Part shown: piece after piece, positions 3,549 to 57,403 of the stretch
How the letters are laid out: every line of letters starts with the position of its first letter
Numbering within the stretch: position 1 is the stretch's first letter
Assembly: GCA_002269645.1 (NCBI GenBank)
Contig: NIVC01000293.1
Location: 186,001-250,000, forward strand
Direction: 5' to 3'
DNA length: 64,000 nt
From: Macrostomum lignano
Lineage: Eukaryota
Made by a program: the position numbers and the translations under genes
The notes under the pieces: generated by a model
What the model saw: only the letters and a program-made list of their open reading frames with translations
What the model was told of the DNA's origin: nothing
The model's database searches: none

Positions 3549-3588
3549 CCAACCTACTTCAAACCACACGCTTACACTCACTACTCAC

Positions 3589-13321: not shown

Positions 13322-14707
13322 TCAAGCGGTCTCAGTAACGGCCTGAGCAGCAGCAACTAGATCAGCCTCCTTCTTGGTTTCCTGATGATGCTGACAGCAG
13401 GCCATCTTCAGCTTGCCTTTTATACCACGGACCAGATCCTCCTCCTCAGTGGTGGTCTCGTGCGCGTGCTGCACCAGCATCTCGTTGCCGCGGGTGACGC
13501 CCCAGTTGTCCGGCTTGCTCATGGCGGACGAGTACGGCCGACCGCTGGCCGGGTTGAGGTTCTCCCAGTACTCGCGGTTGGCCCGGGCTCGAACCCACGG
13601 CTTCGTGTGCATCTTGAGGCCGCCGCCCCAGACAACGTGCTTCTCAGAGCCGGCTGGGAATCGCCCCCGCTCGGCGGCGAGCTCCTCTGCGACGGCGCGG
13701 ATGTGGTAGGGCTCGAAGCCGCAGCAGCCGCCGATGAAGCGGACGCCAAGGTCGTAGGCCTCCCTGGCGTAGCGGTGCATGTCCCAGCGGTTGCAGATCC
13801 TACTCTCCAGAGCGAATGGGAACTCGGGCAGGTCGATGAAGCCCTGCTTCCCAGCATCCGGAGTCATGTAGGCCAACGGCTGGCACATCAGGTAGGCCTT
13901 GAGATTCTCGCGTTCCAGAGCTTCTTTCATCAGCTTGATCGCTTCCAGGCTGACGAACGGATCGTAGTGGCAGTTGACGCCAACGATTTTGGCTCCAGCG
14001 CGAGCCATACGGATGGCGCAGTCGCCCGCGGAGTTGCCGTGCATGTCGCCCTGCGGCCCGATGCACATGCTGCAGGCCACGGGCAGTCCGGTCTCCAGCC
14101 CGACCTCAATGGCCCACTCCGCCTCTTCGACGTGCTCAAAGTACTCACACAGAATGAAGTCGACACCTTCGTCTTTGAAAGCGCCCATCTGGCCTCGGAA
14201 AATCTCCTTGGTGTCCTCCTTGCTGGCGCCGCTCAGGTAAGTCGGGGTCTGGCAGACACCGCCGAGGAACAGGGCACCGCCCTCCTGGGCCACCTCGCGG
14301 GCCACCCGACAAGCGGCAGCGTTGATGTTTGTGCACTGGCAAAATTAAAAATGAAATTTCGGTATTCCAACGCTCACGAGAGGATTGCTGAGATGCCAAG
14401 GTTCAAGTGGGATGCTGGTGTCTTCTGCACTTACCCCGTACTTCTGCGATGCAGTGTTGCCCCGATTAGAAAGCTTGTCATCGCTGGCGTAGAAGGTGAA
14501 CGCCTGCATCACATCAGAGCCGGCTCTGAGAAACTCGCGATGAAGCTGACGCACAGCTTCCGGATGCTCGACAACCGCTTCCGGTGTCCACGGCCCCGCT
14601 TTGACGTAGCCGCGCTTCTCCAGGGCGAACACGAAGCCGCCGTCTCCGATGACAACCTCGCCGTTGTCAAGCCGCTCCATAATGCCGCGTCGCTCGATGG
14701 TGCCCAT
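13322..14707 (-). CDS. BHMT: Betaine-homocysteine S-methyltransferase, copy 1 (428 aa). Exons 14435..14707 and 13322..14335
   Basis: Motifs [46 protein letters not shown] and [11 protein letters not shown] (Zn-binding Cys triad), WENL.PASGRP. One 99-nt GT-AG phase-0 intron. Confidence 0.97.
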
Positions 14708-14815
14708 GGCTGCCGTTGGTAGAATTCCGCTAGAGAATGCTTCGTGGAAATGGGAAATTGCTTCTTCTTTCCAAGTTTTTGGTTATGGAATTTTTAGAGC
14801 GCGTTGGAATTTTCC

Positions 14816-14823
14816 TATTTATA
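14816..14823 (-). promoter_or_regulatory. TATA box (TATAAATA) upstream of BHMT copy 1
   Basis: Exact TATAAATA on the minus strand about 110 bp upstream of the ATG. An equivalent element precedes the other two BHMT starts. Confidence 0.6.
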
Positions 14824-14879
14824 GACGCGGTCATTTCCGGTGACCTTGGCGGCTGGGGGTGGGGAAACCCCCGATTAAA

Positions 14880-14931
14880 AGCCGGTTTTTGCCGAAACCG
14901 GTCCTGTGACTTTCCAGACCGGCAACCGGTT
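14880..14931. promoter_or_regulatory. Cluster of Grainyhead/CP2-like motifs (AGCCGGTT, AACCGGTC, AACCGGTT)
   Basis: Three matches or near matches to AACCGGTT within 52 bp, just upstream of the BHMT1 TATA box. Confidence 0.45.
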
Positions 14932-15090
14932 TTGCCTTTCCAGGACGATCTGATAATTATTGCGAAATCGCGTGCACCAAGGTCGCAGATGCGTTTCTGT
15001 TTTTGTCACACCGCCCGGTTGGGTTGGGCAGGCGTTCTGGATTGGCCAGCTATTTCTATTGAGAAAAGGCTCAGGCGGAGAGGTCACGAG

Positions 15091-15211
15091 AGTCACGTGA
15101 CTGCAAGAGGCAGCTAAAATCGAGGGGTGGAGCTCGGAAGAGGCAAAACTTGAAGTTGCAAATAAAGTTCTGTCGGATTGTTAATTCAGACAGTAGAAAA
15201 TGTCACGTGAC
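15091..15211. promoter_or_regulatory. Two perfect GTCACGTGAC palindromes (CLEAR/E-box type) at 15092-15101 and 15202-15211
   Basis: Seen directly. GTCACGTGAC is the established TFEB/MITF/USF-class bHLH-ZIP consensus. Confidence 0.45.
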
Positions 15212-15705
15212 TTAATGTACGTTGAAATAGGCTACGCCCTTATCAGCATTTTCTTGTCTCTCGAACAGTAATTTAGTTTATTTGTCAACAAAGATAGTTA
15301 AACCTGGTTAGAACCAGTTAAAGCCACTTGTGTTCTCGCAATTACGAAACTTTTGCTAAGTTGGAATTTTCCTTAAAACATAAAATATCATTTTCATTCA
15401 ACTGGAAAATGTACCGAGGTTAGAAAATTCCGCTTCAATTGCTTTCTTCTATAGGAATTTTCTGCAGCCTTCATCTGAGCCTGTCCTGCAGCCAAGAGCC
15501 AAGAGGTCAAGATGCTTAATTGTTCGAAGATTAACAAATCTTTAGCTTGTGCGACTAAGGCTGGAAGATTAACATCTTCTTGGCCTGCATCTGTCAGGTG
15601 AGCATATTGAGAATTGTGAATTTCGATTTTATGCCTCTCTTTTAAAGTTTGTGTCATAAATTTGTAGTTAGGGTAGTGTGCAGCAGTGTGTTTCAGAGCC
15701 ACTCA

Positions 15706-16455
15706 TCACGGTGACCCCGTGATGGTGATCCGTCACGTTGACTCCCTCGCGGTGACTCAATCACAGTGGTTTTATCACGGGGACTCCCATCATGTTGACT
15801 CAATCACGGTGAGTCTATGATGTTGACCCATTCACGGTGACTCCATCACGGTGACTCCATCACGATGACTCCATCACGGTGACTCCATCACGATGACTCC
15901 ATCACGGTGACTCCATCACGGTGACTCCATCACGGTGACTCCATCACGGTGACTCCATCACGGTGACTCCATCACGGTGACTCCATCACGGTGACTCCAT
16001 CGCGGTGACTCCATCACGGTGACTCCATCACGGTGACTCCATCACGGTAACTCAATCAGGGTGACTTAATCACGGTGATTCCATCACGGGGACTCCCATC
16101 ACGTTGACTCAATCATGGTGATTCCATCACGGGGACTTCCGTCACGTTGACCCATTCACGGTGACTCCATCACCTTGACTCAATCACGGTGACTCATTCA
16201 CGGTGACTCCATCACCTTGACTCAATCACGGTGACTCATTCACGGTGACTCCATCACCTTGACTCAATCACGGTGACTCATTCACGGTGACTCCATCACC
16301 TTGACTCAATCACGGTGACTCAATCTCGGTGTTTCAATCACAGTGACTCAAAGATGTTGACCCATCACGGTGACTTCATCACGGTGACTCCATCACGGTG
16401 ACTTCATCACGGTGACTTCCATCACGGCGACTCCATCATTTTGACCCAATCACGG
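15706..16455. repeat. 14-bp minisatellite (CCATCACGGTGACT)
   Basis: Homogeneous core with degenerate flanks. Confidence 0.95.
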
Positions 16456-16739
16456 CACCTCAGCACTACTACATGAACCTGTAGTTTGAGATGAGAACCA
16501 TACACAATTCATTGAAATTTCTTTGCCTATCAATTTTAAGAACAGAAATTGAAAATGATTACAGGTGAAATATTCTTTTCAAAAGGTGAATTAGGTAAAC
16601 AGAGACGCCACCTCATTCTGTTTGGCGCCTTCCATTTCAGCCTGTTTACAATGCATTGAGTCATTCGGTGCCCCTTGAGTCATTTGGCGCTTTTAGGGGT
16701 TGGCGTCCCCAATGAATCCGCCATTTGGCGCCCCCCATC

Positions 16740-17845
16740 GAATATATTTGGCGCCGATATTACGTCTATTTGGCGCCCCATTGAATCAATTTGGTGCTCC
16801 CATTGAATCTATTTGACGCCCCCATTGAGTCAATTTGGCGCCCCCATTGAATCTATTTGGCGCCCCCATTGAGTCAATTTGGCGCCCCCATTGAATCTAT
16901 TTGGCGCCCCCATTGAGTCAATTTGGCGCCCCTATTGGATCTATTTGACACCCCATTGGATCAATCTGGTGCCCCTATTCTATTTGACGCCCCCATTGGA
17001 TCTATTTGGCGCCCCCATTGGATCTATTTGGCGCCCCTATTGGATCTATTTGGCGCCCCTATTGGATCTATTTGGCGCCCCTATTGGATCTATTTGGCGC
17101 CCCCATTGAGTCAATTTGGCGCCCCTATTGGATCTATTTGGCGCCCCCATTGGATCTATTTGGCGCCCCCATTGGATCTATTTGGCGCCCCTATTGGATC
17201 TACTTGGCGCCCCCATTGGATCTATTTGGCGCCCCCATTGGATCTATTTGGCGCCCCCATTGAGTCAATTTGGCGCCCCTATTGGATCTGTTTATTGGCG
17301 CCCCTATTGGATCTATTTGGCGCCCCTATTGGATCTGTTTATTGGCGCCCCTATTGGATCTATTTGGCGCCCCTATTGGATCTACTTGGCGCCCCCATTG
17401 GATCTATTTGGCGCCACCATTTGATCTATTTGGCGCCCCCATTGGATCTATTTGGCGCCCCTATTGAATTTATTTGGCGCCCCTATTGGATCTATTTGGC
17501 GCCCCTATTGGATCTTTTTGGCGCCCCTATCGGATCTATTTGGCGCCCCTATTGGATCTATTTGGCGCCCCTATTGGATCTATTTGGCGCCCCTATTGGA
17601 TCTTTTTGGCGCCCCTATTGGATCTGTTTATTGGCGCCCCTATTGGATCTATTTGGCGCCCCTATCGGATCTATTTGGCGCCCCCATTGGATCTATTTGG
17701 CGCCCCTATTGGATCTATTTGACGCCCCCATTGGATCTATTTGGCGCCCCTATTGGATCAATTTGGCGCCCCTATTGGATCAATTTGGTGCCCCTATTGG
17801 ATCTATTTTGGCGCCCCCATTGAATCAATTTGGCGCCCCCATTAA
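16740..17845. repeat. 22-bp minisatellite (ATTTGGCGCCCC[C/T]ATTGGATCT)
   Basis: Visible period of about 22 bp. Accounts for the ORFs at 16879-17885. Confidence 0.96.
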
Positions 17846-18323
17846 ATCTATTTTAAGCGCGCAAATTTCGGTTATTGCATGCTGATTCAGGTCTGAACTT
17901 CACATAAACATAAACTTGGTCACCGTCACAATCTTGAATATGCTTGAAATTATAAAAGCGATATTTTTCCAGGCACATATGTTAGTGTTTACACCCAGCT
18001 GTGCAACAGGCTGTGCGTGTGCGTCTGTTGACAAAGCCCGCGCATGAGCTGCGCTTGTTATGAACTTTTCGGGTGCAATCCGTATTTTCCCTTGTTTCTA
18101 TTTTTAAGTTCTAATAGAAAAATGGCATATACTGTTTTCTCAAGTATGGTTAGTCTCACTTTCCTAGAGTGACTCACATTTAACCTTGGCGAGCAACTTC
18201 ATTTAAACAAGATTTAATAACTTTGCCATCACGGCTATAATTTTTGTTTTGGTTCTATCAAGTTCTGTCCAGTTTGTTCAAGTTTACTTGAACCGAAATG
18301 ACTGAATGAGTAAACACACGGAA

Positions 18324-18341
18324 AACCGGTTTAAACCGGTT
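18324..18341. promoter_or_regulatory. 18-bp palindrome AACCGGTTTAAACCGGTT (double Grainyhead-like site) upstream of DMGDH
   Basis: Identical to the palindrome at 35342-35359. Confidence 0.5.
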
Positions 18342-18679
18342 CTTCTGCTGTCTGCCGCAGCCAACTCTTGCCCCCGTCTAGTGGGCTGCTGACTTGTACA
18401 GGTTTGAGATTAGTCAGAGTGGCCTTGAAGTTCTGGGGGGTGTGAACGCGCAGGTCATGTGATCTGTCGTTTTTTGCTTTCTTCAGAATACTACTGTGTA
18501 ATCTAGGTAAAAGTAGTATAGTGCTTGAAATCCAAATATTTTAAGCTATTTTTTATTTCTTCTCTTAGTTTCTCCTGTAGCTCAATTTGGCATACCTACT
18601 CAAGGCTGCAAGTGTTGAGTAAAAAATTTGTGTTGAGTAGTGTTAAGTAAAAATAATAAGTGTAAAATTTATAGCCTGT

Positions 18680-19530
18680 GCTCAGTCTCAGTCATAGATT
18701 GTTTACAGTCTCAGTCATAGACTGTGTACAGTCTCAGTCATAGATTGTGTACAGTCTCAGTCATAGACTGTGTACAGTCTCAGTCATAGATTGTGTACAG
18801 TCTGAGTCATAGATTGTGTACAGTCTCAGTCATAGATTGTGTACATTCTCAGTCATAGATTGTGTACATTCTCAGTCATAGATTGTGTACATTCTCAGTC
18901 ATAGATTGTGTACATTCTCAGTCATAGATTGTGTACATTCTCAGTCATAGATTGTGTACAACAGTCTCAGTCATAGATTGTGTACAACACTCTCAGTCAT
19001 AGATTGTGTACAACAGTCTCAGTCATAGATTTTGTACATTCTCAGTCATAGATTGTGTACAACAGTCTCAGTCATAGATTGTGTACATTCTCAGTCATGG
19101 ATTGTGTACAACAGTCTCAGTCATAGATTGTGTACATTCTGAGTCATAGATTGTTTACAGTCTCAGTCATAGATTTTGTACATTCTGAGTCATAGATTGT
19201 TTACAGTCTCAGTCATAGATTGTGTACATTCTGAGTCATAGATTGTTTACAGTCTCAGTCATAGATTGTGTACATTCTCAGTCATAGATTGTGTACAACA
19301 GTCTCAGTCATAGATTGTGTACAACACTCTCAGTCATAGATTGTGTACAACAGTCTCAGTCATAGATTTTGTACATTCTCAGTCATAGATTGTGTACATT
19401 CTCAGTCATAGATTGTGTACATTCTCAGTCATAGATTGTGTACAACAGTCTCAGTCATAGATTGTGTACAACAGTCTCAGTCATAGATTGATTGTGTACA
19501 ACAGTCTCATTCATAGATTGTGTACAATCT
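18680..19530. repeat. 23/26-bp minisatellite (CAGTCTCAGTCATAGATTGTGTA)
   Basis: Visible tandem array upstream of the DMGDH coding start, possibly inside a 5'-UTR intron. Confidence 0.96.
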
Positions 19531-19588
19531 CAGCAGCCCATTCAGACGTATTGCAATTGAAACACCCATAAAAGAACCAACTCCCATA

Positions 19589-19740
19589 GTCAGGTCCGCA
19601 GTTCACCCTGTGTGAGCGTGTGTGTATGAGTGCGTACCTGCGTACAGTACTGATGCTTGTCTGTGATCAGGAGTCATAGCGGAATGTACAGAATTGCAGT
19701 CAGCACTGGTCGTGGGACGATGTCACGGCAGGGTGTAAAG
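19589..19740 (+). mobile_element. Diverged 3' fragment of the SINE family seen at 24126 and 62966
   Basis: Shares CAGG(T/G)CCGC..CAC.C.TGTGTGAG, GGAGTC..GCGGAATG and CAGGGTG blocks in the same order, aligned by eye only. Confidence 0.4.
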
Positions 19741-19748
19741 AATATTTA

Positions 19749-22700
19749 ATGGAAATGTTCATTCTCAGTAGTGTCAAAAGCATCAGTTGTTCTACATTAT
19801 CCTACCCTCGCAGGGCTGTCTCGTCTTCCACAGAGCAGCAGCGCCAGCATCCTCTGTCCAAGCGATCGAGCAATGAAGCCGAAGTTGTAATCATTGGCGG
19901 TGGCATTGTGGGCGTCAGCACTGCTTACCATTTGGCTAAGGCCGGAGTTAAGGATGTTGTTCTGTTGGAGAAATCTGAACTTACCGCCGGTTCTACTTGG
20001 CACGCTGTGAGTAGCGTGTTTAGCGTATCGTCGATAAAATTGCTGACAAAATGTTAAATAAAATATTGAATTTTTGTTACTTTTATCTCTGTGAATTATT
20101 TTACTTCAAAAAACGACAGTTATGTTGATTTTATCTCGCAGTTAAGTGTTCCATTCCTTTGTAACAGTTCAGTGCCATTCCTTTGTAACAGTTCAGTGCC
20201 ATTCCTGTGTAACAGTTCAGTGCCATTCCTGTGTAACAGTTCAGTGCCATTCCTGTGTAACAGTTCAGTGCCATTCCTGTCTGACAGTTCAGTGCCATTC
20301 CTGTGTAACAGTTCAGTGCCATTCCTGTGTAACAGTTCAATGCCATTCCTGTGTAACAGTTCAGTGCCATTCCTGTGTAACAGTACAGTGCCATTCCTGT
20401 CTGACAGTTCAGTGCCATTCCTGTGTAACAGTTCAGTGCCATTCCTGTGTAACAGTTCAGTGCCATTTCTGTGTAACAGTTCAGTGCCATTCCTTTGTAA
20501 CAGTTCATTGCCATTCCTGTGTAACAGTTCAGTGCCATTCCTGTGTAACAGTTCAGTGCCATTCCTGTGTAACAGTTCAGTGCCATTCCTGTGTAACAGT
20601 TCAGTGCCATTCCTGTCTGACAGTTCAGTGCCATTCCTGTGTAACAGTTCAGTGCCATTCCTGTCTGACAGTTCAGTGCCATTCCTGTGTAACAGTTCAG
20701 TGCCATTCCTGTGTAACAGTTCAGTGCTATTCCTGTGTAACAGTTCAGTGACATTCCTGTCTAACAGTTCAGTGCCATTCCTTTGTAACAGTTCAGTGCC
20801 ATTCCTGTGTAACAGTTCAGTGCCATTCCTTTGTAACAGTTCAGTGCCATTCCTGTGTAACAGTTCAGTGCCATTCCTTTGTAACAGTTCAGTGCCATTC
20901 CTTTGTAACAGTTCAGTGCCATTTCTGTGTAACAGTTCAGTGCCATTCCTTTGTAACAGTTCAGTGCCATTCCTGTGTAACAGTTCAGTGCCATTCCTTT
21001 GTAACAGTTCAGTGCCATTCCTGTGTAACAGTTCAGTGCCATTCCTGTGTAACAGTTCAGTGCCATTCCTGTGTAACAGTTCAGTGACATTCCTGTCTAA
21101 CAGTTCAGTGCCATTCCTGTGTAACAGTTCAGTGCCATTTCTGTGTAACAGTTCAGTGCCATTCCTGTGTAACAGTTCAGTGCCATTCCTGTGTAACAGT
21201 TCAGTGCCATTCCTGTGTAACAGTTCAGTGCCATTCCTGTGTAACAGTTCAGTGACATTCCTGTCTGACAGTTCAGTGCCATTCCTGTGTAACAGTTCAG
21301 TGCCATTCCTGTGTAACAGTTCAGTGCCATTCCTGTGTAACAGTTCAGTGCCATTCCTGTGTAACAGTTCAGTGCCATTCCTGTCTGACAGTTCAGTGCC
21401 ATTCCTGTCTGACAGTTCAGTGCCATTCCTGTGTAACAGTTCAGTGCCATTCCTGTCTGACAGTTCAGTGCCATTCCTGTGTAACAGTTCAGTGCCATTC
21501 CTGTCTGACAGTTCAGTGCCATTCCTGTGTAACAGTTCAGTGCCATTCCTGTCTGACAGTTCAGTGCCATTTCTGTGTAACAGTTCAGTGCCATTCCTGT
21601 CTGACAGTTCAGTGCCATTCCTGTCTAACACACAGAAAATGTTCTATAAAAACTGTGTCCCCACACGCAGGCCGGCCTCACCACATTCTTCCACCCGGGC
21701 ATTAACGTGCGCCGCGTCCATTACTACAGCATGCAACTGTACTCTCAGCTCGAGGCGGAGACTGACCAACCAGTGGGTCTGCACACTCCAGGCTCCCTGC
21801 GCCTCATCACTACACCGACTCGCATGGACGAGGCCCGATATCAGATGTCCAGGGCAGCCTGGTGCCAAGCCGAACAGCACCTAGTTGGACCGGAGAAATG
21901 CTTGGAATTGTGTCCACTGCTCAACATGAGCACAGTGCTGGGTGGGATCTACAACCCTGGAGATGGTCACATCGATCCCTACTCGGTCACAATGGCGCTA
22001 GCCGCCGGGGCGCGTAAGTATGGCGCCGAGCTGTACCAGAACAGCCAGGTACGCGCCACAAGTCAGGACTCAAAAGGTATCTGGACAATAGTGACTGATC
22101 ACGGCGAACTCAAATCCAAGCATCTGGTCAACGCGGCTGGATTTCACGCTCGTGACGTTGGAAAACTGTCGGGATTGGACCTGCCAATCATTCCGGTGCA
22201 TCATCAGTACGTCATCACCAAAGCTGTGCCTGAGGTGGTCGAACTGAAGCGAGAGCTTCCTGTACTGCGTGACTTGGAAGCCTCCTACTATCTTCGCCAG
22301 GAGAAGCAGGGCCTCTTAGTTGGGCCGTACGAGTCTGCGGAGAACATGATGCTCTGCACTGACTGGTACGATAACGGGGTGCCGGACTCGTTCGGTAGGG
22401 AGCTGTTTGAGCCGGACCTTGGCCGAATCATGCCTCACCTGGAGCGCGCCATGGAGATGGTGCCGGCGATGCAGAACGCCGAGATTCAATCCGTCATATC
22501 CGGGCCGATCACCTACAATGCGGAGAATGCCGGACTGATTGGCCCGGTGGAGGGGCCGCTGAATTATTGGTTGCTAGGCGGCCTTGGTTACGGCATAATC
22601 CACGGTGGCGGCGTTGGCAAATACGTGGCGGACTGGATTCGTACTGGCGAACCGCCGTACGATTTGATTGAGCTGGACGCTAACAGGTATGGCAGAGTTT

Positions 22701-25700: not shown

Positions 25701-27218
25701 AATTTCCGGGCATTAATCAAATCATTTAATTGATTGGTTGGAACAGAGCAACTAAACAAACTGCTATTGTACCAGTATTCCATTCTTCATGCGGTACAAT
25801 GCAGAATTCCCTAAGCTAGTCTATTCTTCCTACTTTAGTAAAGATTATTAAAAGCTGCTCCAATTCATCTGACTTCCTCATAGAGACATTAATCTTGTAT
25901 TTGCATCATATATACCGGTAGATTTGTACTTTAGTGTACGGTAATATAGAGATATATATATATAATCGTTCAACCTTAGCAAAGGCCTTGATACATGAAT
26001 GATGTGTAACTTTTACATGTACGTTTAAATCGTGAAACTTTTTGTGCAAAACTTTGAGTTTAAATCTCACCAAATCTCTATTATTCTGCCTAAATCAACC
26101 TAAATCTAGATTCATCTACCTAAATCTAGATTCATCTACCTAAATCTAGATTCATCTACCTAAATCTAGATTCATCTACCTAAATCTAGATTCATCTATC
26201 TAAATCTCGATTCATCTACCTAAATCTGGATTCATCTACCTAAATCTAGATTCATCTACCTAAAGCTAGATTCATCTACCTAAATCTAGACCTATCTACC
26301 TGAATTTAGATTCATCTAACTAAATCTAGATTCATCTACCTAAATCTAGATTCATCTACCTAAATCTAGATTCATCTACCTAAATCTAGATTCATCTACC
26401 TAAATCTGGATTCATCTACCTAAATCTAGATTCATCTACCTAAATCTAGACCTATCTACCTGAATTTAGATTCATATAACTAAATCTAGATTCATCTACC
26501 TAAATCTAGATTCATCTACCTAAATCTAGACCTATCTACCTGAATCTAGATTCATCTAACTAAATCTAGATTCATCTACCTAAATCTAGACCCATTAACC
26601 TAAATCTAGACCCATCAACCTAAATCTAGACCCTTCAAACTAAATCTAGACCCATCAACCTAAATCTAGACCCATCAAACTAAATCTAGATTCATCTACC
26701 TAAATCTAGACCCATTAACCTAAATCTAGACCCATCAACCTAAATCTAGACCCTTCAAACTAAATCTAGACCCATCAAACTAAATCTAGACCCATCAAAC
26801 TAAATCTAGACCCATCAAACTAAATCTAGACCCATCAAACTAAATCTAGACCCATCAAACTAAATCTAGACCCATCAAACTAAATCTAGACCCATCAAAC
26901 TAAATCTAGACCCTTCAAACTAAATCTAGACCCATCAAACTAAATCTAGATATATCTACCTAAACCTTCGCAATAAACCACCACTCAAACCCCTAAAAGG
27001 TGGTCGGCAACACGACATCCGGTAGCTACAGTTTCAGCCGCGGTCACGGACTCGCCTTTGCATACGTGCCCGCCAGCCTGGGCGCCAGCACCCAGCTGGA
27101 GGTGGATCTTCTCGGTCGTCGCGTCCCGGCAGTGGTGCTGTCGAAACCACCGTTGCTGCCGGAGCAGGCGAGAAAGAAGACACCCGAAGTGGCATCCGTT
27201 GGTTCGGGTCAGCAATGA
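19749..27218 (+). CDS. DMGDH: Dimethylglycine dehydrogenase, mitochondrial. Exons 19749 (or ATG 19755)..20006, 21671..22686, 23370..23719, 24640..25421, 27000..27218
   Basis: FAD motif [10 protein letters not shown]; STWHA|[12 protein letters not shown] is DMGDH-type (covalent-FAD His) rather than SARDH-type; DGHIDPYS; [16 protein letters not shown]; GcvT-like [12 protein letters not shown] and SLRLEKG. All four introns are GT-AG with matching phases. Ser/Arg-rich N-terminus resembles a mitochondrial presequence. Confidence 0.96.
20149..21630. repeat. 24-bp minisatellite (CAGTTCAGTGCCATTCCTGTGTAA) in DMGDH intron 1
   Basis: Visible 24-bp period. Accounts for the SSVPFLCN / HRNGTELL ORFs. Confidence 0.98.
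22705..23215. repeat. Degenerate ~20-21-bp minisatellite (GGGCAACCGTGTCTTTGGAGT) in DMGDH intron 2
   Basis: Repeated CAACCGTGT core at about 20-bp spacing. Confidence 0.9.
23745..24120. repeat. 22-bp minisatellite (AATGTGTCACTCTGAATC[A/T]GCC) in DMGDH intron 3
   Basis: Visible tandem copies. Confidence 0.95.
24126..24479 (-). mobile_element. tRNA-derived SINE (full length, about 350 bp)
   Basis: Minus strand begins GGCCGGAGCCCAGTGGTCCAGC (A box) and has GGCTCGATTCC (B box). The body aligns along its length with the plus-strand copy at 62966..63327. Confidence 0.8.
26095..26965. repeat. 20-bp minisatellite (TAAATCTAGATTCATCTACC / TAAATCTAGACCCATCAAAC) in DMGDH intron 4
   Basis: Visible 20-bp period with two variant blocks. 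Confidence 0.96.
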
Positions 27219-28619
27219 TCTGGATCACGATAGTCAGTTGTGGTTCATGATGACGATTTGAAAATTGATTGTGTACAGATAGAGATAGATTCGTGATTAG
27301 ATTGGAATACAATCGTGATTATATTGGGATAATTTGGATTTATTGATTTATTTTGGGATAATCGTTATTAGATTTGGATATAATCGTGATTGGATTGGGA
27401 TATTATCGTGATTAGATTGAGATAGAATCGCGATTAGTTTCAGAAAGAACCGTCATTAGTTCGCTGTTATTAGGATTCATTGTAGATATTGACAGGGACA
27501 TGTTATAATGTCACTTCGTTAAGTACGACCTTTTTGATTGATTTATTTCCTGCATCCTTTAACAAATGTTTGTTTCCTAATTATAATGTAAATCTTCCAT
27601 CGGACTCAGTCCGGAAATTCTCGTCGCAAAATATGTTCGTTCAATAGTTTATCTATAAGATCTATAGATAAAAATAGATTAGTGGGTTAATTTATTTATT
27701 AGGGTAAAATTCTGTCATTAAATGCCCTTGACAGAAACTGGTGCAGATTTGATTTATTTTTTGTTTAATTTATTATACTTCTAAAATTGTTTATAGAATT
27801 TGAATATTGCTTAATCTTGTGTTAATTTTTCAGATCTCTCATTAATTTCGGTTGCTGCCACGTATGTGCGATAAATCATTGATTTAGTAAATTTTTATGC
27901 TGTCTTTATTAATTAATAAATTTATAGGTTTATAAATTTATAAATTTATAAGTTTATAAATTTATATCATTATGTTATAAGCAATCTTTTGTAAAATGAT
28001 CCTGATTAGTAATGCGCATTCTAATAAATTAAATTTACATACCAATAGCTACAGTTCTCGTCGTAAATACCTTTATTTTTTTAAATACATCCTTATTTAT
28101 TGCCTGTGTGTTTTCGTAAAACTGTGCTTTTTCCGGCTTGAGAATAATTTAGCACATTTTCTAATGTTAGTTAAAGGTTAGAAAAAATGAAATTTAAAAT
28201 AAGGATAAAGTTTTCAATGTGGACGAAACAAACAGGATTTTTTAAATTTCACTATATTTATTTTGCTATGGGGTGGCAGCCGTACAGTCTAAAATTCACT
28301 TTGCTTATACTAGACGTTTATAGACCTAGTAATGCTCGCTAAAACAATTTAATGTTGACTGGAGTAAATGAAAGCAATAATGAATAAGTTTTTTATAGCT
28401 AATGTCTAAGAAATGATGAAAAAATTAAAACTGTCAGAAACGTTTTAGCTTACTGCGTTTTAATTTGCAAAATTATTCTTGTAGAGTAGAATGACCTTTC
28501 TCGACACTTTTTATCATCGATTTACTAAGACTTCGTGTATGAATTTCGCAGCAGCCATAATTATCAATGAGGAAGATGACAATGAAACAAATAAAAAGCA
28601 AATTGTTGATTTATTTTTT

Positions 28620-31600
28620 CTATTTCTTCCTCATCTGCTGGCCCAGCTGCTTGACTCGATTGTCTTCTTCTTCGGTGGTCTCGTGCGCGTGCTGCACCAG
28701 CATCTCGCTGCCGCGGGTGACGCCCCAGTTGTCCGGCCTGCTCATGGCGGCCGAGTATGGCCGACCGCTGGCCGGGTTCAGGTTCTCCCAGTAGTCCCGG
28801 CCAGACCGGGCTCGAATCCACGGTTTAGTGCTCATCTTCATGCCGCCGCCCCAGGCGATGTGCTTCTCGGAGCCGGCTGGGAATCGGCCTCTCTCGGCGG
28901 CGAGCTCCTCAGCGATGGCGCGGATGTGATAGGCCTCGAAGCCGCAGCAGCCGCCAATGTAGCGGACGCCAAGGTCGTAGGCAGCCCTGCCAGATTTAAA
29001 ATATACAGATTTTACTACTTATTATACTACTGCTGATTCTAATATAGACTTGCGAAATCGCTTCTGTTGCACTGCATGCTGGTTAAAACAATTGACAATT
29101 TTAATTCAACAATTCGAAGCTTCAAAAAGTATGAATTAGACTAATGGTGAATTGATTAGACTAATGGTGAATTGATTCGACTAATGGTGAATTGATTAGA
29201 CTAATGGTGAATTGATTAGACTAATGGTGAATTGATTAGACTAATGGTGAATTGATTAGACTAATGGTGAATTGATTAGACTAATGGTGAATTGATTAGA
29301 CTAATGGTAAATTGATTAGACTAATGGTGAATTGATTAGACTAATGGTGAATTGATTAGACTATTGGGGCATGGATTAGACTTTTAAAGCATGGATTAGA
29401 CTAATAAGGCATGGATTAGACTAATAAGGCATGGATTAGACTTTTAAAGCATGGATTAGACTAATAAGGCATGGATTAGACTAATAAGGCATGGATTAGA
29501 CTAATAAGGCATGGATTAGACTAATAAGGCATGGATTAGACTAATAAGGCATGGATTAGACTAATAAGGCATGGATTAGACTAATAAGGCATGGATTAGA
29601 CTAATAAGGCATGGATTAGACTAATAAGGCATGGATTAGACTAATAAGGCATGGATTAGACTAATAAGGCATGGATTAGACTAATAAGGCATGGATTAGA
29701 CTAATAAGGCATGGATTAGACTAATAAGGCATGGATTAGACTAATAAGGCATGGATTAGACTAATAAGGCATGGATTAGACTAATAAGGCATGGATTAGA
29801 CTAATAAGGCATGGATTAGACTAATAAGGCATGGATTAGACTAATAAGGCATGGATTAGACTAATAAGGCATGGATTAGACTAATAAGGCATGGATTAGA
29901 CTAACAAGGCATGGATTAGACTAATAAGGCATGGATTAGACTAATAAAGCATGGATTAGACTAATAAAGCATGTATTAGACTAATAAAGCATGGATTAGA
30001 CTAATAAGGCATGGATTAGACTAATAAGGCATGAATTAGACTAATAAGGCATGGATTAGACTAATAAGGCATGGATTAGACCAAAGGACAATAAATGTAG
30101 ATTCAACCTGTCTCACCTAGCGAAGCGGTGCATGTCCCAGCGGGTGCACAATCGACTCTCCATGGCCAAAGGAAACTCGGGCAGGTCGATGCAGCCCTGC
30201 TTCTCAGCATCCGGAGTCATATAGGCCACGGGCTGGCACATCAGGTAGGCCTTGAGATTCTCGCGCTCCAAACCAGCCTTCATCAGCTTGATCGCTTCCA
30301 GGGTGACAAACGGATCGAAGTGGCAGTTGACGCCCACGAGTTTCGCACCAGCGCGAGCCATACGGACGGCGCAGTCGCCCGCGGAGTTGCCGTGCATGTC
30401 GCCTTGCGGTCCGATGCACATCGTGCAGGCCACGGGCAGCCCGGTCTCCAGCCCGACCTGCGGCGGGGGGGCGTTGTTGGTTGGCTAGATTAGCAATCCA
30501 TTATCACGTACTTTAATTTCCTGATTTGGCTAGATTAGCAATCCATCATCGTGTACTTTAATTTCCTGATTTGGCTAGATTAGCAATCCATCATCGTGTA
30601 CTTTAATTTCCTGATTTGGCTAGATTAGCAATCCATCATCGTGTACTTTAATTTCCTGATTTGCCTAGATTAGCAATCCATCGTGTACTTTTATTCCTTA
30701 TTTGGCTAAATTAGCTATATATCGTGTACTTTTATTTTCTGATTTGGCTAGATTAGCAATCCATCATCGTGTACTTTAATTTCCTGATTTGGCTAGATTA
30801 GCAATCCATCATCGTGTACTTTTATTCTCTGATTTGGCTAGATTAGCAATCCATCGTGTACTTTTATTTCTTATTTGGCTAAATTAGCTATATATCGTGT
30901 ACTTTTATTTCTTATTTGGCTAAATTAGCTATATATCGTGTACTTTTATTTTCTGATTTGGCTAGATTAGCAATCCAATACAGCCTGCAATTTTATTAAT
31001 AATTTGGATCAGTTTGTGGATAATTTGAAAATGCTAGTCCATGGTCGAAACCAATGCCAAAAATGAGGTCTGTTCGAACTGTTTCGATCATAGACTAACA
31101 TATTCTTCGCAATTTTTTTAACACCGAGTAGAGTATCTTACCTCAATGGCCCACTCTGCCTCCTCAACATGCTCAAAGTACTCGCACAGCACCAAGTCGG
31201 CTCCTTCGGCCTTGAAAGTCTGCATCTGGCCACGGAAGATGGCCTGGATTGAAGCTTTGTCACCGCCGCTCAGGTAGGTCGGAGTCTGGCACACTCCGCC
31301 TAGAAACAGGGCGTCACCTTCTTGAGCGACCTCACGAGCAATGCGACACGCGGCGGTGTTGATGGCGGTGCACTGAAATTCAAGGGGGGTTGACTATATA
31401 TTAGCAATCCATTCTATGGGTTTGATAGATTAGCAATCCATTCTATGGGTTTGATAGATTAGCAATCCATTCTATAGGTTTGGCTATAGATTAGCAATCC
31501 ATTCTATAGGTTTGCTAGATTAGCAATCCATTCTATAGGTTTGATAGATTAGCAATCCATTTTATAGGTTTGATAGATTAGCAATCCATTCTATAGGTTT

Positions 31601-32340
31601 GATAGATTAGCAATCCATTCTATAGGTTTGCTAGATTAGCAATCCATTCTATGGGTTTGATAGATTAGCAATCCATTCTATGGGTTTGATAGATTAGCAA
31701 TCCATTCTATGGGTTTGATAGATTAGCAATCCATTCTATAGGTTTGATAGATTAGCAATCCATTCTATAGGTTTGATAGATTAGCAATCCATTTGGGTCA
31801 CTTGGGTCACTTAATATAAGAAGGATCATACAGAATTTTCAGCGTTGTGAAATTTCGATCTTATGAATCCCCTCCCATCCATTTTATTAATATGAACGCC
31901 AGTTTGAGCTAAATTACTAACGATCTGAAAAAAGTTTTACAAACAGTTTAGTAGAAAGAGTCGAATCAAAAAGTGTGAGGCGAAATCAAAGAGCTGTTTT
32001 TGTATCTCTCCAGATGAAGCGTTAAAGCAGATTGCTCAAGCGTTCTCATGTGCTCAAACTCTAAGTCTCACCCCATACTTTTCCTGAGCCGTGTTGCCTC
32101 TATTGGAAAGCTTGTCCTCGCTGGCATAGTAAGTGAACGCCTGCATCACATCAGAGCCGGCTCTGAGAAACTCGCGATGAAGCTGCTTTACAGCTTCCGG
32201 GTATTCGACCACCGCTTCCGGTGTCCACGGCCCCGCCTTGACGTAGCCGCGCTTCTCCAGGGCGAACACGAAGCCGCCGTCTCCAATGACAACCTCGCCG
32301 TTGTCAAGCCGCTCCAGAATGCCGCCTCTTTTGTTTGACA

Positions 32341-32341
<1 letters not shown>
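28620..32341 (-). CDS. BHMT: Betaine-homocysteine S-methyltransferase, copy 2 (402 aa). Exons 32072..32341, 31142..31372, 30117..30457, 28620..28986
   Basis: Spliced ORF is uninterrupted with GT-AG introns of phase 0, 0 and 2. [28 protein letters not shown] and GGCCGF motifs are intact. Confidence 0.95.
29140..30082. repeat. 20-bp minisatellite, two sub-arrays (ATTGATTAGACTAATGGTGA then ATGGATTAGACTAATAAGGC), in BHMT2 intron 3
   Basis: Visible 20-bp period. Confidence 0.97.
30480..30975. repeat. ~45-bp minisatellite (TTGGCTAGATTAGCAATCCATCATCGTGTACTTTAATTTCCTGAT) in BHMT2 intron 2
   Basis: Visible tandem copies of 40-45 bp. Confidence 0.93.
31400..31793. repeat. 29-bp minisatellite (GATAGATTAGCAATCCATTCTATAGGTTT) in BHMT2 intron 1
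   Basis: Visible tandem copies sharing AGATTAGCAATCCAT with the intron 2 array. Confidence 0.95.
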
Positions 32342-32342
<1 letters not shown>

Positions 32343-32422
<80 letters not shown>

Positions 32423-32435
32423 GTCTGTCTGTCTG
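32343..32435. repeat. (TGTC)n microsatellite abutting the BHMT2 start codon
   Basis: Tetranucleotide run directly 5' of ATG 32341 on the minus strand. Confidence 0.97.
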
Positions 32436-32462
32436 CTGATTTTCTGCACTACCAGTCGCAGC

Positions 32463-32515
32463 TATATATACCCATAGCTACTCCGTCAAAATGAAAACCA
32501 GTTCCAGCTGGTTTT
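32463..32515 (-). promoter_or_regulatory. TATA-like box (TATATATA, 32463-32470) plus inverted AAAACCAG...CTGGTTTT Grainyhead-like sites upstream of BHMT2
   Basis: Same order of elements as upstream of the other two BHMT starts. Confidence 0.45.
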
Positions 32516-33127
32516 ACAATCAAACTTATCGATTCGAAACTTTTTCTTAAGTTGACCCAAGAAGTCTGAGCATTGGAAAAGATTCGAGATTTCTGAGAGC
32601 AGCTTATCGTGAAACCTAGTAAACATGGCTTCCTACCCTCGTCAAACCCGCAATTCAGGTTCCACATTTCTCTAGTCCAAGGAGTTCCGAAATTTTGCAT
32701 CGGAATCAAATTAACTTTTTCATAGAAAATAAAACAACTCTTTGTTTTAATAAGCTGTATTCAAACTCACTGTCTCTTTACATCGCGAGATTTTAAATTA
32801 ATCAATCGAATTTTCAAATCTATTTCTGTAGATTAACATTCCAGATCTGTTAGTTAACGCAGTCCTTGTTCAGCTTTAGTCTAGATTGTAAAACAATTTT
32901 GAGACTTGGTCATTATCTGCGAGTAAGCTGCTAGGGGGTAAACTAGGGGGGGGGGTACGTATTAAACACCTGAGGAATTCTCACGCAGTTCCTCAGCTCA
33001 CGCTTTCGATACGTTGCGCCACGAAACTCGCTTTGGCTCAGTTTGGGGCGTTCACAGACAATTTCTGTGTTTGTGTTATATGAATTGAGGGCAGATTTAA
33101 TGATACAGTAGTTTATAACACTGCTTT

Positions 33128-34828
33128 CTGGGTGCTGAGGTCACTGGGTGCTGAGGACACTGGGTGCTGAGGACACTGGGTGCTGAGGACACTGGGTGCT
33201 GAAGACACTGGGTGCTGAAGACACTGGGTGCTGAGGACACTGGGTGCTGAGGACACTGGGTGCTGAAGACACTGGGTGCTGAAGACACTGGGTGCTGAGG
33301 ACACTGGGTGCTGAGGACACTGGGTGCTGAGGACACTGGGTGCTGAGGACACTGGGTGCTGAGGACACTGGGTGCTGAGGACACTGGGTGCTGAAGACAC
33401 TGGGTGCTGAAGACACTGGGTGCTGAGGACACTGGGTGCTGAGGACACTGGGTGCTGAGGACACTGGGTGCTGAGGACACTGGGTGCTGAGGACACTGGG
33501 TGCTGAGGACACTGGGTGCTGAGGACACTGGGTGCTGAGGTCACTGGGTGCTGAGGACACTGGGTGCTGAGGACACTGGGTGCTGAAGTCACTGGGTGCT
33601 GAGGATACTGGGTGCTGAAGTCACTGGGTGCTGAGGACACTGGGTGCTGAAGTCACTGGGTGCTGAGGACACTGGGTGCTGAAGTCACTGGGTGCTGAGG
33701 ACACTGGGTGCTGAGGACACTGGGTGCTGAGGACACTGGGTGCTGAGGACACTGGGTGCTGAGGACACTGGGTGCTGAGGACACTGGGTGCTGAGGACAC
33801 TGGGTGCTGAGGACACTGGGTGCTGAGGACACTGGGTGCTGAGGACACTGGGTGCTGAGGACACTGGGTGCTGAGGACACTGGGTGCTGAGGACACTGGG
33901 TGCTGAGGACACTGGGTGCTGAGGACACTGGGTGCTGAAGTCACTGGGTGCTGAGGACACTGGGTGCTGAAGTCACTGGGTGCTGAGGACACTGGGTGCT
34001 GAAGTCACTGGGTGCTGAGGACACTGGGTGCTGAGGACACTGGGTGCTGAGGACACTGGGTGCTGAGGACACTGGGTGCTGAGGACACTGGGTGCTGAGG
34101 ACACTGGGTGCTGAGGACACTGGGTGCTGAGGACACTGGGTGCTGAGGACACTGGGTGCTGAGGACACTGGGTGCTGAGGACACTGGGTGCTGAGGACAC
34201 TGGGTGCTGAGGACACTGGGTGCTGAAGACACTGGGTGCTGAGGACACTGGGTGCTGAGGACACTGGGTGCTGAGGACACTGGGTGCTGAGGACACTGGG
34301 TGCTGAGGACACTGGGTGCTGAGGACACTGGGTGCTGAGGACACTGGGTGCTGAGGACACTGGGTGCTGAGGACACTGGGTGCTGAGGACACTGGGTGCT
34401 GAGGACACTGGGTGCTGAGGACACTGGGTGCTGAGGACACTGGGTGCTGAGGACACTGGGTGCTGAGGACACTGGGTGCTGAGGACACTGGGTGCTGAGG
34501 ACACTGGGTGCTGAGGTCACTGGCTGCTGAGGACACTGGGTGCTGAGGACACTGGGTGCTGAGGACACTGGGTGCTGAGGTCACTGGCTGCTGAGGTCAC
34601 TGGGTGCTGAGGTCACTGGGTGCTGAGGTCACTGGGTGCTGAGGACACTGGGTGCTGAGGACACTGGGTGCTGAGGACACTGGGTGCTGAGGACACTGGG
34701 TGCTGAGGACACTGGGTGCTGAGGTCACTGGGTGCTGAGGACACTGGGTGCTGAGGTCCCTGGGTGCTGAGGTCACTGGGTGCTGAGGACACTGGGTGCT
34801 GAGGACACTGGGTGCTGAGGTCACTGGT
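33128..34828. repeat. 16-bp minisatellite (GACACTGGGTGCTGAG)
   Basis: More than 100 visible copies. Accounts for the SSAPSVLSTQCPQHPV ORFs. Confidence 0.98.
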
Positions 34829-34930
34829 TGCTAAGGAGCTCCATTTTGAGGATATTCTGCAGCTGAAGGTTTAAGGAGAAAGACAGAAAACCAAAATAAT
34901 TTCAAAAGCCACTATCAGCCACAAACTCAC

Positions 34931-35200
34931 CCCGAATTTCTGCGATGCAGTGTTGCCCCGGTTGGAAAGCTTGTCCTCGCTGGCATAGTAAGTGAACGCC
35001 TGCATCACATCAGAGCCGGCTCTGAGAAACTCGCGATGAAGCTGCTTCACAGCTTCTGGGTACTCGACCACCGCTTCCGGTGTCCACGGCCCCGCCTTGA
35101 CGTAGCCGCGCTTCTCCAGGGCGAACACGAAGCCGCCGTCTCCAATGACAACGTCGCCATTGTCGAGCCGCTCCATAATGCCTCCTCGTTTGTTCGACAT
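34931..35200 (-). CDS. BHMT: Second intact BHMT first exon (90 codons): alternative first exon of BHMT2 or a truncated third copy
   Basis: [23 protein letters not shown]...ASQKFG followed by a GTGAGT donor, phase 0, same length as exon 32072..32341. No BHMT exon 2 lies between it and 32341. Confidence 0.85.
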
Positions 35201-36423: not shown

Positions 36424-37117
36424 TGGTGCTGGCGCCCCTTGGTGCTGGCGCCCCTTGGTGCTGGCGCCCCTTGGTGCTGGCGCCCCTTGGTGCTGGCGCC
36501 CCTTGGTGCTGGCGCCCCTTGGTGCTGGCGCCCCTTGGTGCTGGCGCCCCTTGGTGCTGGCGCCCCTTGGTGCTGGCGCCCCTTGGTGCTGGCGCCCCTT
36601 GGTGCTGGCGCCCCTTGGTGCTGGCGCCCCTTGGTGCTGGCGCCCCTTGGTGCTGGCGCCCCTTGGTGCTGGCGCCCCTTGGTGCTGGCGCCCCTTGGTG
36701 CTGGCGCCCCTTGGTGCTGGCGCCCCTTGGTGCTGGCGCCCCTTGGTGCTGGCGCCCCTTGGTGCTGGCGCCCCTTGGTGCTGGCGCCCCTTGGTGCTGG
36801 CGCCCCTTGGTGCTGGCGCCCCTTGGTGCTGGCGCCCCTTGGTGCTGGCGCCCCTTGGTGCTGGCGCCCCTTGGTGCTGGCGCCCCTTGGTGCTGGCGCC
36901 CCTTGGTGCTGGCGCCCCTTGGTGCTGGCGCCCCTTGGTGCTGGCGCCCCTTGGTGCTGGCGCCCCTTGGTGCTGGCGCCCCTTGGTGCTGGCGCCCCTT
37001 GGTGCTGGCGCCCCTTGGTGCTGGCGCCCCTTGGTGCTGGCGCCCCTTGGTGCTGGCGCCCCTTGGTGCTGGCGCCCCTTGGTGCTGGCGCCCCTTGGTG
37101 CTGGCGCCCCTTGGTGT
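36424..37117. repeat. 16-bp minisatellite (GGTGCTGGCGCCCCTT), an inverted one-base-longer variant of the 15-bp family
   Basis: Perfectly homogeneous period 16; its reverse complement is AAGGGGCGCCAGCACC. Confidence 0.98.
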
Positions 37118-57175: not shown

Positions 57176-57213
<38 letters not shown>

Positions 57214-57218
57214 TAGAA

Positions 57219-57251
<33 letters not shown>

Positions 57252-57403
57252 CTAAGACAGAGACAGACAGACACTAAGATAGAGACAGACAGAACGACAG
57301 ACAGACAGACAGACAGACAGACAGATAGAAAGACAGACAGACAGACAGACAGACAGACACTAAGACAGAGACAGACAGACACTAAGATAGAGACAGACAG
57401 AAC

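Follow-up and report, generated by a model that had tools for sequence, protein, structure and literature searches.

The genes for two enzymes of betaine catabolism, BHMT and DMGDH, lie next to each other in the flatworm Macrostomum lignano, as they do in human, which raises the question of whether this linkage was inherited from a distant animal ancestor or arose separately in the two lineages. We analysed a 64-kb stretch of contig NIVC01000293.1 (the window; coordinates below are counted from its first base), modelling the genes by hand splicing and then comparing the models with deposited M. lignano proteins. The gene order is BHMT-a (- strand), DMGDH (+) and BHMT-b (-), after which comes another BHMT first exon, also intact; translated, our spliced models match the deposited proteins P0001, P0003, P0126 and P0132 exactly. 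The gene elements listed in the original prediction for this DNA all lie where it had placed them, and the host, claimed there to be a protostome, is indeed one. No other BHMT or DMGDH relics are found in the window, nor is SARDH, the next enzyme. Minisatellites are abundant across the region.

BHMT-a comprises two exons on the - strand separated by a phase-0 intron of 99 bp. Exon 1 (14435..14707) begins with an ATG at 14707 and ends in a GTAAGT donor, and exon 2 (13322..14335), the last, contains the stop codon and spans sequence that in BHMT-b is divided among exons 2-4. Together they translate exactly to P0001 (BOX15_Mlig031806g1), a protein of 428 aa. A PDB search with this protein returned rat BHMT (1umy) at 624 bits over rat residues 9-394, with the next family, MetH, at 56 bits, and its best homologues are animal BHMTs at 67-74% identity. 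The Pfam homocysteine S-methyltransferase domain (S-methyl_trans, PF02574) is recognized in both copies, at 163 bits in BHMT-a (residues 19-309) and 155 bits in BHMT-b (residues 18-309). Both also carry the zinc cysteine motifs VNCH and GGCCG and the substrate-site motif EYFEH at equivalent positions, and those of BHMT-a align to 1umy. With a fitting barrel and motifs, and in BHMT-a the BHMT-specific C-terminal oligomerisation region, BHMT-a and BHMT-b are predicted betaine-homocysteine S-methyltransferases (EC 2.1.1.5).

DMGDH, on the + strand, has six coding exons. The first and most distal (15512..15597) encodes MLNCSKINKSLACATKAGRLTSSWPASV- and ends in a GTGAGC donor; the deposited protein P0132 (881 aa) is matched only when this exon is included, and the exon is also found in the paralogous contig L010. 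Within intron 1 (15598..19813, 4216 bp) are three minisatellite arrays that are unrelated to one another (15704-16438, 16723-17853 and 18683-19533), as well as an ATG in frame at 19749. Exon 2 (19814..20006) encodes the Rossmann motif GGGIVG and the covalent-FAD histidine motif STWHA|AG, and is followed by exons 3 (21671..22686), 4 (23370..23719), 5 (24640..25421) and 6 (27000..27218, with the stop codon). The protein contains the Pfam domains DAO, FAO_M, GCV_T and GCV_T_C in order, all above cut-offs, and matches human DMGDH (5l46) at 1050 bits over residues 30-863 in a PDB search. The histidine of STWHAAG carries covalent FAD in mammalian DMGDH; in the flatworm protein this motif is at residue 89 and aligns to the same motif in 5l46. 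DMGDH proteins of vertebrates, echinoderms, brachiopods and annelids are 54-58% identical to it, and among the best 120 homologues every functionally named one is DMGDH, with none named SARDH or PDPR. Judged from these scores and names, the dehydrogenase is an orthologue of DMGDH (EC 1.5.8.4), as had been proposed, rather than of SARDH or PDPR.

BHMT-b was predicted to converge on the 3′ end of DMGDH, and the two genes are indeed tail-to-tail, 1.4 kb apart. Its exons 2 (31142..31372), 3 (30117..30457) and 4 (28620..28986, with the stop codon), all on the - strand, can be joined to either of two first exons on the same strand, each with an ATG: the proximal exon 1b (32072..32341, GTGAGA donor), which gives the UniRef model P0126, or the distal exon 1x (34931..35200, GTGAGT donor), which gives the NCBI model P0003. 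With exon 1b the protein is 402 aa long and aligns with BHMT-a end to end. Exon 1x had been described as an extra first exon; it is intact at 35200-34931 but not extra, being the annotated first exon of BHMT-b and an alternative to 1b. A (CAGA)n microsatellite lies directly upstream of exon 1b. The first coding exon of BHMT-b would have been duplicated in the Macrostomum lineage to yield mutually exclusive versions whose 90 encoded residues are almost the same, presumably from different promoters.

The two BHMT proteins are 81% identical to each other, whereas neither exceeds 74% identity to the BHMT of another animal, and a neighbour-joining tree groups the two. By these comparisons the BHMT duplication is lineage-specific, in agreement with the original prediction, and merely mimics the mammalian BHMT/BHMT2 pair.

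The many minisatellites of this very repeat-rich genome are typical sites of assembly error, and the genes could in principle have been joined by one. A second M. lignano contig, NIVC01000254.1, is however colinear with NIVC01000293.1 over ~40 kb at ~94% identity and has the same elements in the same succession (exons 1x and 1b, BHMT-b, DMGDH, BHMT-a and a cNMP-binding gene). Because this contig repeats the whole layout we exclude misassembly, the chance of which is next to nil given also that other phyla show the same arrangement. It is likewise quite improbable that we are looking at a functionless duplicate in decay, be it BHMT-b, one of its alternative first exons, or both. The likeness of 1x to 1b and to the first exon of BHMT-a stops at the exon borders, with dissimilar flanks, and a 1.7-kb satellite sits between 1x and 1b, both of which would fit such decay. 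Against this, frames, splice sites and catalytic and zinc-binding motifs are all intact; 1x and 1b keep their open frames and GT donors on both homeologous contigs; and each is used by a deposited gene model. Identity between 1x and 1b is 83% at third codon positions and 94-98% at first and second positions (differences of 17% and just 2-6%), a pattern that resembles purifying selection.

One deposited model from the sister contig, P0121, splices exon 1x across the antisense DMGDH gene to exon 2 of BHMT-a. Taken at face value, it would make the three genes one interleaved regulatory unit in which 1x serves both BHMT genes, with exon 2 of BHMT-b (3.6 kb away) and exon 2 of BHMT-a (20 kb away) as its alternative splice partners, and methyltransferase transcription running antisense through DMGDH could tune the latter. 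We regard such a unit as distinctly unlikely; if real, and combined with a divergent promoter between BHMT-a and DMGDH, it would mean that a co-regulated pair older than the bilaterians had been elaborated in a way specific to flatworms.

The age of the linkage was addressed by surveying adjacency and orientation in nine species, with mixed annotations that make the gap sizes approximate. In six of them DMGDH (-) and BHMT (+) are divergent and immediately adjacent: the brachiopod Lingula (gap of 0.57 kb), the frog Spea (0.73 kb), the priapulid Priapulus (0.93 kb), the scyphozoan Rhopilema (2.3 kb), the annelid Capitella (3.8 kb) and the sea urchin Lytechinus (4.4 kb). The genes beside BHMT in these other species share 46-60% identity with flatworm DMGDH. 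The chiton Liolophura has a DMGDH-like gene in tandem orientation, 9.4 kb upstream of BHMT, and in two sea anemones DMGDH is not within 10 kb of BHMT. Including the flatworm, no called gene separates the pair in Cnidaria (Scyphozoa), Brachiopoda, Annelida, Platyhelminthes, Priapulida, Echinodermata and Vertebrata, and Mollusca is an eighth phylum with the linkage, re-oriented. Within this sample the pair occurs in cnidarian, lophotrochozoan, ecdysozoan and deuterostome genomes, the groups for which the original prediction had called for a survey. Since the divergent pair occurs in both cnidarian and bilaterian species, the linkage is older than the divergence of cnidarians from bilaterians, and it is not a product of convergence.

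Together, these findings favour retained ancestral microsynteny: with a probability of roughly 0.78, we consider the locus to be, in M. lignano, an old and conserved head-to-head pair that shared regulation has kept from being parted, plus a lineage-specific BHMT-b with a doubled first exon. Divergent transcription of BHMT-a and DMGDH would then have been inherited from at least the cnidarian-bilaterian ancestor, and the Macrostomum lineage would have added BHMT-b on the far side of DMGDH. The products would act consecutively, BHMT turning betaine plus homocysteine into dimethylglycine and DMGDH oxidising the dimethylglycine in the mitochondrion.

The mammalian DMGDH-BHMT2-BHMT locus resembles that of the flatworm in having orthologous DMGDH and BHMT genes and two BHMT-family genes beside one DMGDH. 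At human 5q14.1, DMGDH is divergent from its nearest BHMT-family gene, and the orientation is the same for flatworm and Spea. Both mammalian BHMT copies are in tandem on one side of DMGDH, whereas the flatworm copies flank it; and mammalian BHMT2 is shortened internally and at its C-terminus, in contrast, by description, to BHMT-b, which is full length when judged against BHMT-a. Alternative first coding exons also set BHMT-b apart from the mammalian locus. The proposed three-gene echo of the human locus therefore divides in two: the DMGDH/BHMT pair is homologous, while the second BHMT is of independent origin and on the other side of DMGDH. Because the second copies are independent, part of the resemblance is convergent. 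Beyond these genes, Lingula keeps JMY downstream of BHMT, and in pig ARSB, DMGDH, BHMT2 and BHMT fall within one window on SSC2 (PMC10034349), whereas homologues of JMY and ARSB were not detected in the 64-kb flatworm window.

The start codons of BHMT-a and DMGDH are separated by a divergent intergenic region of 804 bp (14708..15511), a putative bidirectional promoter. A head-to-head distance of about 5 kb had been predicted from the ATG at 19749, which falls at the end of the 4.2-kb first intron; from the annotated ATG at 15512 the start-to-start distance is 804 bp, an upper bound for the distance between the transcription start sites, and this fits the spacing of <~1 kb used as a criterion for bidirectional promoters. 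Between the homeologous contigs the gap is 97.1% identical, compared with an overall figure of 94.3% and one of 90.9% for the 3′ flank of BHMT-a, a contrast resting on ~23 differences in a single comparison. Shared 7- to 11-mers show no excess among the four upstream regions, which does not bear out the shared promoter motifs claimed earlier. From its position and conservation we infer that this interval may act as a shared bidirectional promoter for co-expression of BHMT-a and DMGDH.

What has kept the two genes together can be asked separately from how they met. That they were joined independently in flatworms and vertebrates, consecutive enzymes gaining from being clustered, is very improbable, even though a second BHMT beside DMGDH did arise separately in Macrostomum and mammals. 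A single origin is far more parsimonious for immediate divergent adjacency in seven phyla across Cnidaria, Spiralia, Ecdysozoa and Deuterostomia, and, in Irimia 2012, randomised gene order yields an expectation of ~0.015 conserved pairs per genome (PMC3514665). A convergent origin of the DMGDH-BHMT pair is thus effectively refuted. Passive retention is a weightier alternative, though we still find it doubtful: the ancestral pair would survive because a sub-kilobase gap is a tiny target for breakpoints, with no selection for co-regulation. Most species have a short gap (0.57-4.4 kb), two sea anemones and the chiton show the pair separated or re-oriented, and the missing excess of shared motifs would also be in keeping with it. 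Such passivity accords poorly, however, with retention in eight phyla, among them a genus reported to have lost all ancestral linkage groups (PMC11410931). It also sits uneasily with 2.7 kb of minisatellite that has built up just inside DMGDH intron 1 and not in the gap, with the better conservation of the gap than of flanking DNA between homeologs, and with the excess of co-expression described for conserved 5′-5′ pairs as a class (PMC3514665). For an ancient pair held together by selection, the most likely cause of persistence would be regulatory sequence in the short divergent interval on which both genes draw, such that a breakpoint within this interval would uncouple two enzymes needing joint expression.

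Metabolic gene clusters had been called rare in animals, which overstates the case. Passages of Irimia 2012 (PMC3514665) describe ~600 (595) conserved ancestral microsyntenic pairs (CAMPs), including HSPD1-HSPE1 and the metabolic pair HADHA-HADHB, and propose shared cis-regulation as the cause of their retention; flatworms are not among the species named in those passages. Like CAMPs as characterized there, BHMT and DMGDH are non-paralogous, adjacent in many phyla, 5′-5′ across a short interval and functionally coupled, and the pair, adjacent in seven phyla and linked in Mollusca, falls within the definition given. According to the same source just 19 of the 595 CAMPs are kept in at least seven lineages, so conservation in eight phyla would place BHMT-DMGDH among the best-kept. 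Our literature search returned no paper discussing the pair, which may already figure in published supplementary lists. The locus is, then, an old conserved gene pair of a described class and not a new type of metabolic cluster.

Fungal, plant and bacterial metabolic clusters, operons included, likewise place consecutive enzymatic steps side by side. The flatworm locus differs in comprising only two enzyme families, in lacking any transporter or pathway-specific regulator within the block, and in that BHMT-a and DMGDH are divergent, separate units instead of one operon. The two enzymes also work in different compartments, BHMT in the cytosol and DMGDH in the mitochondrial matrix.

As consecutive betaine and one-carbon enzymes encoded head-to-head since before the cnidarian-bilaterian split, the pair is a clear example of animal metabolic microsynteny. 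M. lignano has working transgenesis. The pair's persistence is all the more notable in Macrostomum, where, according to PMC11410931, ancestral linkage groups are otherwise no longer detectable at all, and this contrast recommends the 804-bp gap for asking whether shared regulation holds conserved 5′-5′ pairs together. The independent BHMT duplications of mammals and Macrostomum, together with the duplicated first exon, are of minor interest for one-carbon metabolism and the evolution of gene structure.

We built gene models by hand from open reading frames, tblastn matches and splice sites, and every model matched the translation of a deposited Macrostomum lignano protein exactly, with GT-AG ends at all introns of BHMT-a, DMGDH and BHMT-b. 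BHMT-a lies on the minus strand in two exons (14707-14435 and 14335-13322) that encode the 428-aa deposited protein P0001, and its product (13322-14707) is 100% identical to M. lignano BOX15_Mlig031806g1. DMGDH is a six-exon gene on the plus strand (coding exons 15512-15597, 19814-20006, 21671-22686, 23370-23719, 24640-25421 and 27000-27218) corresponding to the 881-aa protein P0132. Exons 2-4 of BHMT-b, on the minus strand (31372-31142, 30457-30117 and 28986-28620), are preceded either by exon 1b (32341-32072), giving the deposited protein P0126, or by exon 1x (35200-34931), giving the NCBI model P0003. The original prediction of two BHMT genes, DMGDH and a further BHMT first exon in a protostome invertebrate is therefore confirmed with two corrections, M. 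lignano being a free-living flatworm. The first concerns the spacing of BHMT-a and DMGDH, which had been put at about 5 kb from a presumed DMGDH start at the ATG at 19749. Because the deposited model starts at 15512, the two genes are only 804 bp apart, start-to-start; most of the claimed 5 kb is DMGDH intron 1, 2.7 kb of which consists of three minisatellite arrays (15704-16438, 16723-17853 and 18683-19533). The second concerns the additional first exon, which is present as described but is no leftover, being the first exon of an annotated BHMT-b transcript.

The ATG at 19749, closely preceded by a stop codon, is in frame and opens the 65 bases 5′ of the DMGDH exon 2 acceptor (19749-19813). 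It could mark an alternative 874-aa DMGDH product from an internal promoter, or these bases could simply be intronic. We rejected an exon duplication linking the peptide that follows this ATG to that of the distal DMGDH exon, as the similarity is too weak (~7/21 matches, gapped).

Pfam assigns S-methyl_trans to both BHMT-a and BHMT-b, and in both the zinc cysteines (VNCH and GGCCG) and the EYFEH motif are present; BHMT-a aligns with rat BHMT over residues 9-394 (624 bits). The dehydrogenase has the Pfam domain order DAO, FAO_M, GCV_T, GCV_T_C and aligns with human DMGDH at 1050 bits; the 834 aligned residues take in the STWHAAG histidine motif. Its best 120 database homologues, from vertebrates to Lingula, Capitella and Owenia, are 54-58% identical to it. 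All functionally named proteins among these 120 are dimethylglycine dehydrogenases and none is SARDH or PDPR, so the best homologues group the enzyme with DMGDH, as originally proposed, rather than with either relative.

The layout is also found on a sister M. lignano contig, NIVC01000254.1, in the order 1x, 1b, BHMT-b exons 2-4, opposite-strand DMGDH, BHMT-a and a cNMP-binding gene. This contig is colinear with the window over ~40 kb, at ~94% identity outside satellites. The arrangement is thus present twice in the genome, which rules out a local misjoin of these genes. The two copies are homeologs or divergent haplotypes.

We examined the genomic context of BHMT, 10 kb to either side, in nine other species. 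DMGDH and BHMT are head-to-head in Lingula anatina (Brachiopoda, gap 0.57 kb), Capitella teleta (Annelida, 3.8 kb), Priapulus caudatus (Priapulida, 0.93 kb), Lytechinus variegatus (Echinodermata, 4.4 kb), the scyphozoan cnidarian Rhopilema esculentum (2.3 kb) and the frog Spea bombifrons (Vertebrata, 0.73 kb). In human, DMGDH and BHMT2 are likewise divergent. In these six species the direct upstream neighbor of BHMT is an 817-882-aa gene with DAO/FAO_M/GCV_T/GCV_T_C architecture, whose exons within the examined loci are 46-60% identical to flatworm DMGDH; the Lingula, Capitella and Spea neighbors are themselves among the proteins named DMGDH in the 120 best homologues. In the chiton Liolophura sinensis (Mollusca) the two genes are in tandem, 9.4 kb apart, and the chiton gene's C-terminus has an 87-bit match to human DMGDH residues 729-817. 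DMGDH was not found within 10 kb of BHMT in two anthozoan cnidarians, Actinia tenebrosa and Exaiptasia diaphana.

Direct divergent adjacency of DMGDH and BHMT is therefore common to seven phyla. The original prediction had left open whether such linkage reflects microsynteny kept from an ancestor or convergent clustering, in which the genes would have come together separately in different lineages, and this distribution supports the former. For the pair itself, convergence is hardly a credible rival: the same adjacency recurs in all seven phyla, whereas gene-order randomization yields only ~0.015 chance-conserved pairs per genome, a figure given by Irimia et al. 2012 (PMC3514665). Most parsimoniously, the DMGDH/BHMT pair arose once, before cnidarians and bilaterians diverged, and was later lost in Actiniaria and rearranged by an inversion on the branch leading to the chiton.

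The conserved block may have been larger. In Lingula BHMT is followed directly downstream by a JMY/WHAMM-family gene (L001, the Lingula locus, 17146-20832), as it is in human, and because of this shared position the ancestral block may have been DMGDH-BHMT-JMY. A tblastx search for JMY and KxDL, both neighbors in Lingula, found neither in the window, and none of the neighboring genes in the window corresponds to the vertebrate neighbors ARSB and JMY.

The dimethylglycine that BHMT produces in the cytosol is removed by DMGDH in mitochondria, and this product is commonly described as inhibiting BHMT. The conserved 5′-5′ orientation of the pair and its short gaps would be a signature of shared regulation. 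Irimia et al. (PMC3514665) tie such orientation with sub-kb to few-kb gaps to shared regulation and excess co-expression, and HADHA-HADHB is a metabolic example among their conserved 5′-5′ pairs. Between the two M. lignano contigs, the 804-bp gap is 97.1% identical, close to the 98.3% of coding sequence and higher than the BHMT-a 3′ flank (90.9%) and the regional mean (94.3%), which is mild evidence of constraint. The gap is also free of the satellite expansion seen in DMGDH intron 1. Passive retention, in which the pair survives as a small target for breakpoints, is a live rival to shared regulation. The shared promoter motifs originally proposed in favor of co-regulation are unsupported at the level of shared words: the 800-bp regions upstream of BHMT-a, DMGDH, 1b and 1x have no 11-mer in common, and 7- to 9-mers shared among the four 500-bp upstream regions show no excess over Markov shuffles.

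The second BHMT gene is a more recent addition. BHMT-a and BHMT-b share 81% identity, neither exceeds 74% with the BHMT of any other animal, and in a neighbor-joining tree they cluster, together with a database relative (P0002). The anticipated lineage-specific duplication is borne out by these comparisons, and is independent of the one that produced mammalian BHMT and BHMT2. In mammals the BHMT copies are in tandem on one side of DMGDH, whereas in the flatworm they flank it: BHMT-a keeps the ancestral head-to-head placement, and BHMT-b is tail-to-tail with DMGDH. A relaxed tblastn search of the whole window found no further BHMT or DMGDH pseudo-exons, nor is there a DMGDH relic beyond BHMT-b, so nothing in the window points to a lost second DMGDH of the kind that would favor an origin of BHMT-b by block duplication.

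Two 3′ introns of BHMT-b, after its residues 167 and 281, are absent from BHMT-a, a difference that is either loss in BHMT-a or gain in BHMT-b. Both positions are off the exon breaks of other animals (about 155, 205, 265 and 342). By tblastn, the only breaks matching other phyla are the BHMT intron after residue 91 and the DMGDH intron at STWHA|AG, a pattern that fits extensive intron turnover in the Macrostomum lineage.

Exons 1x, 1b and 1a (the BHMT-a first exon) share 87-92% DNA identity that breaks off only a few bases from the exon boundaries, with no similarity among their flanks. When 1x is compared with 1b, identity is 83% at third codon positions and 94-98% at first and second positions; across the remainder of the gene, third positions of BHMT-a and BHMT-b are 73% identical. 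The ATG and GT donor of both exons are intact on both contigs, and each exon is employed by a deposited model. These features are best read as mutually exclusive first exons under purifying selection. Since 1x and 1b code for almost identical 90 residues, any difference between them would lie in the promoter. A (CAGA)n microsatellite (32342-32400, minus strand) abuts the exon 1b ATG in frame, creating an upstream open frame that codes for RQTD repeats.

A further deposited protein, P0121 (427 aa; NIVC01000254.1 locus, L010 10001-31541), joins 1x′, the sister-contig counterpart of 1x, to the large exon of BHMT-a′. Its 21.5-kb span, equivalent to 35200-13322 in the window, crosses BHMT-b and the entire antisense DMGDH. 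P0121 could reflect genuine splicing over this distance, or a chimera of paralogues created during transcript assembly. A BHMT-a allele ending in QKFG exists (deposited protein P0123), and would have ~35 bases spanning the junction in common with transcripts that contain 1x.

Together, our findings support ancient microsynteny, a BHMT duplication specific to this lineage and a sound assembly. In the literature searched, the DMGDH-BHMT pair is not discussed, whether as microsynteny, as head-to-head or as a bidirectional promoter; the sole match for BHMT, DMGDH and synteny concerns a bacterium, and Ganu 2015 analyzes neither synteny nor protostomes. As a class, conserved ancestral microsyntenic pairs have been described by Irimia et al. 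(PMC3514665), who count 595, mostly 5′-5′, and that study's species sampling makes it likely that DMGDH-BHMT is already in its supplementary list. The locus is thus a well-documented further case of an already described class. In Macrostomum hystrix, metazoan ancestral linkage groups are reported to have left no trace (Ivankovic et al. 2024, PMC11410931), and a pre-bilaterian gene pair persisting against such a background is a useful exception.

Among neighboring open reading frames, Pfam recognized only a tetraspanin (11089-11796, plus), a cNMP-binding-domain gene (3588-8515, minus) and a multi-exon citrate synthase (54395-59067, minus); two annotated single-exon genes (38286-38906, minus; 39495-40502, plus) have no Pfam match. 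Staggered BLAST hits mark a long tandem array of 15-bp period at the window's left end (~150-3550), which overlaps the cNMP-binding gene region and is also on the sister contig.

Each DMGDH and BHMT-b intron, as well as the 1x-1b interval, has its own minisatellite array; the 99-bp BHMT-a intron has none. Units are 14-45 bp, in up to 107 copies, and the arrays are mostly unrelated. Beyond those of DMGDH intron 1, arrays lie at 20151-21630, 22719-23220, 23745-24108, 26094-26964, 29131-30081, 30481-30977, 31396-31793, 33128-34837 and 36424-37116, the last two having 16-bp units and being ~69% alike. A dispersed ~350-bp repeat occurs at 24125-24477 (plus) and 62969-63318 (minus), the copies 81% identical and one of them within DMGDH intron 4 (23720-24639, between coding exons 4 and 5). 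ARAGORN called no tRNA at its tRNA-like end; the repeat may be a SINE-like element.
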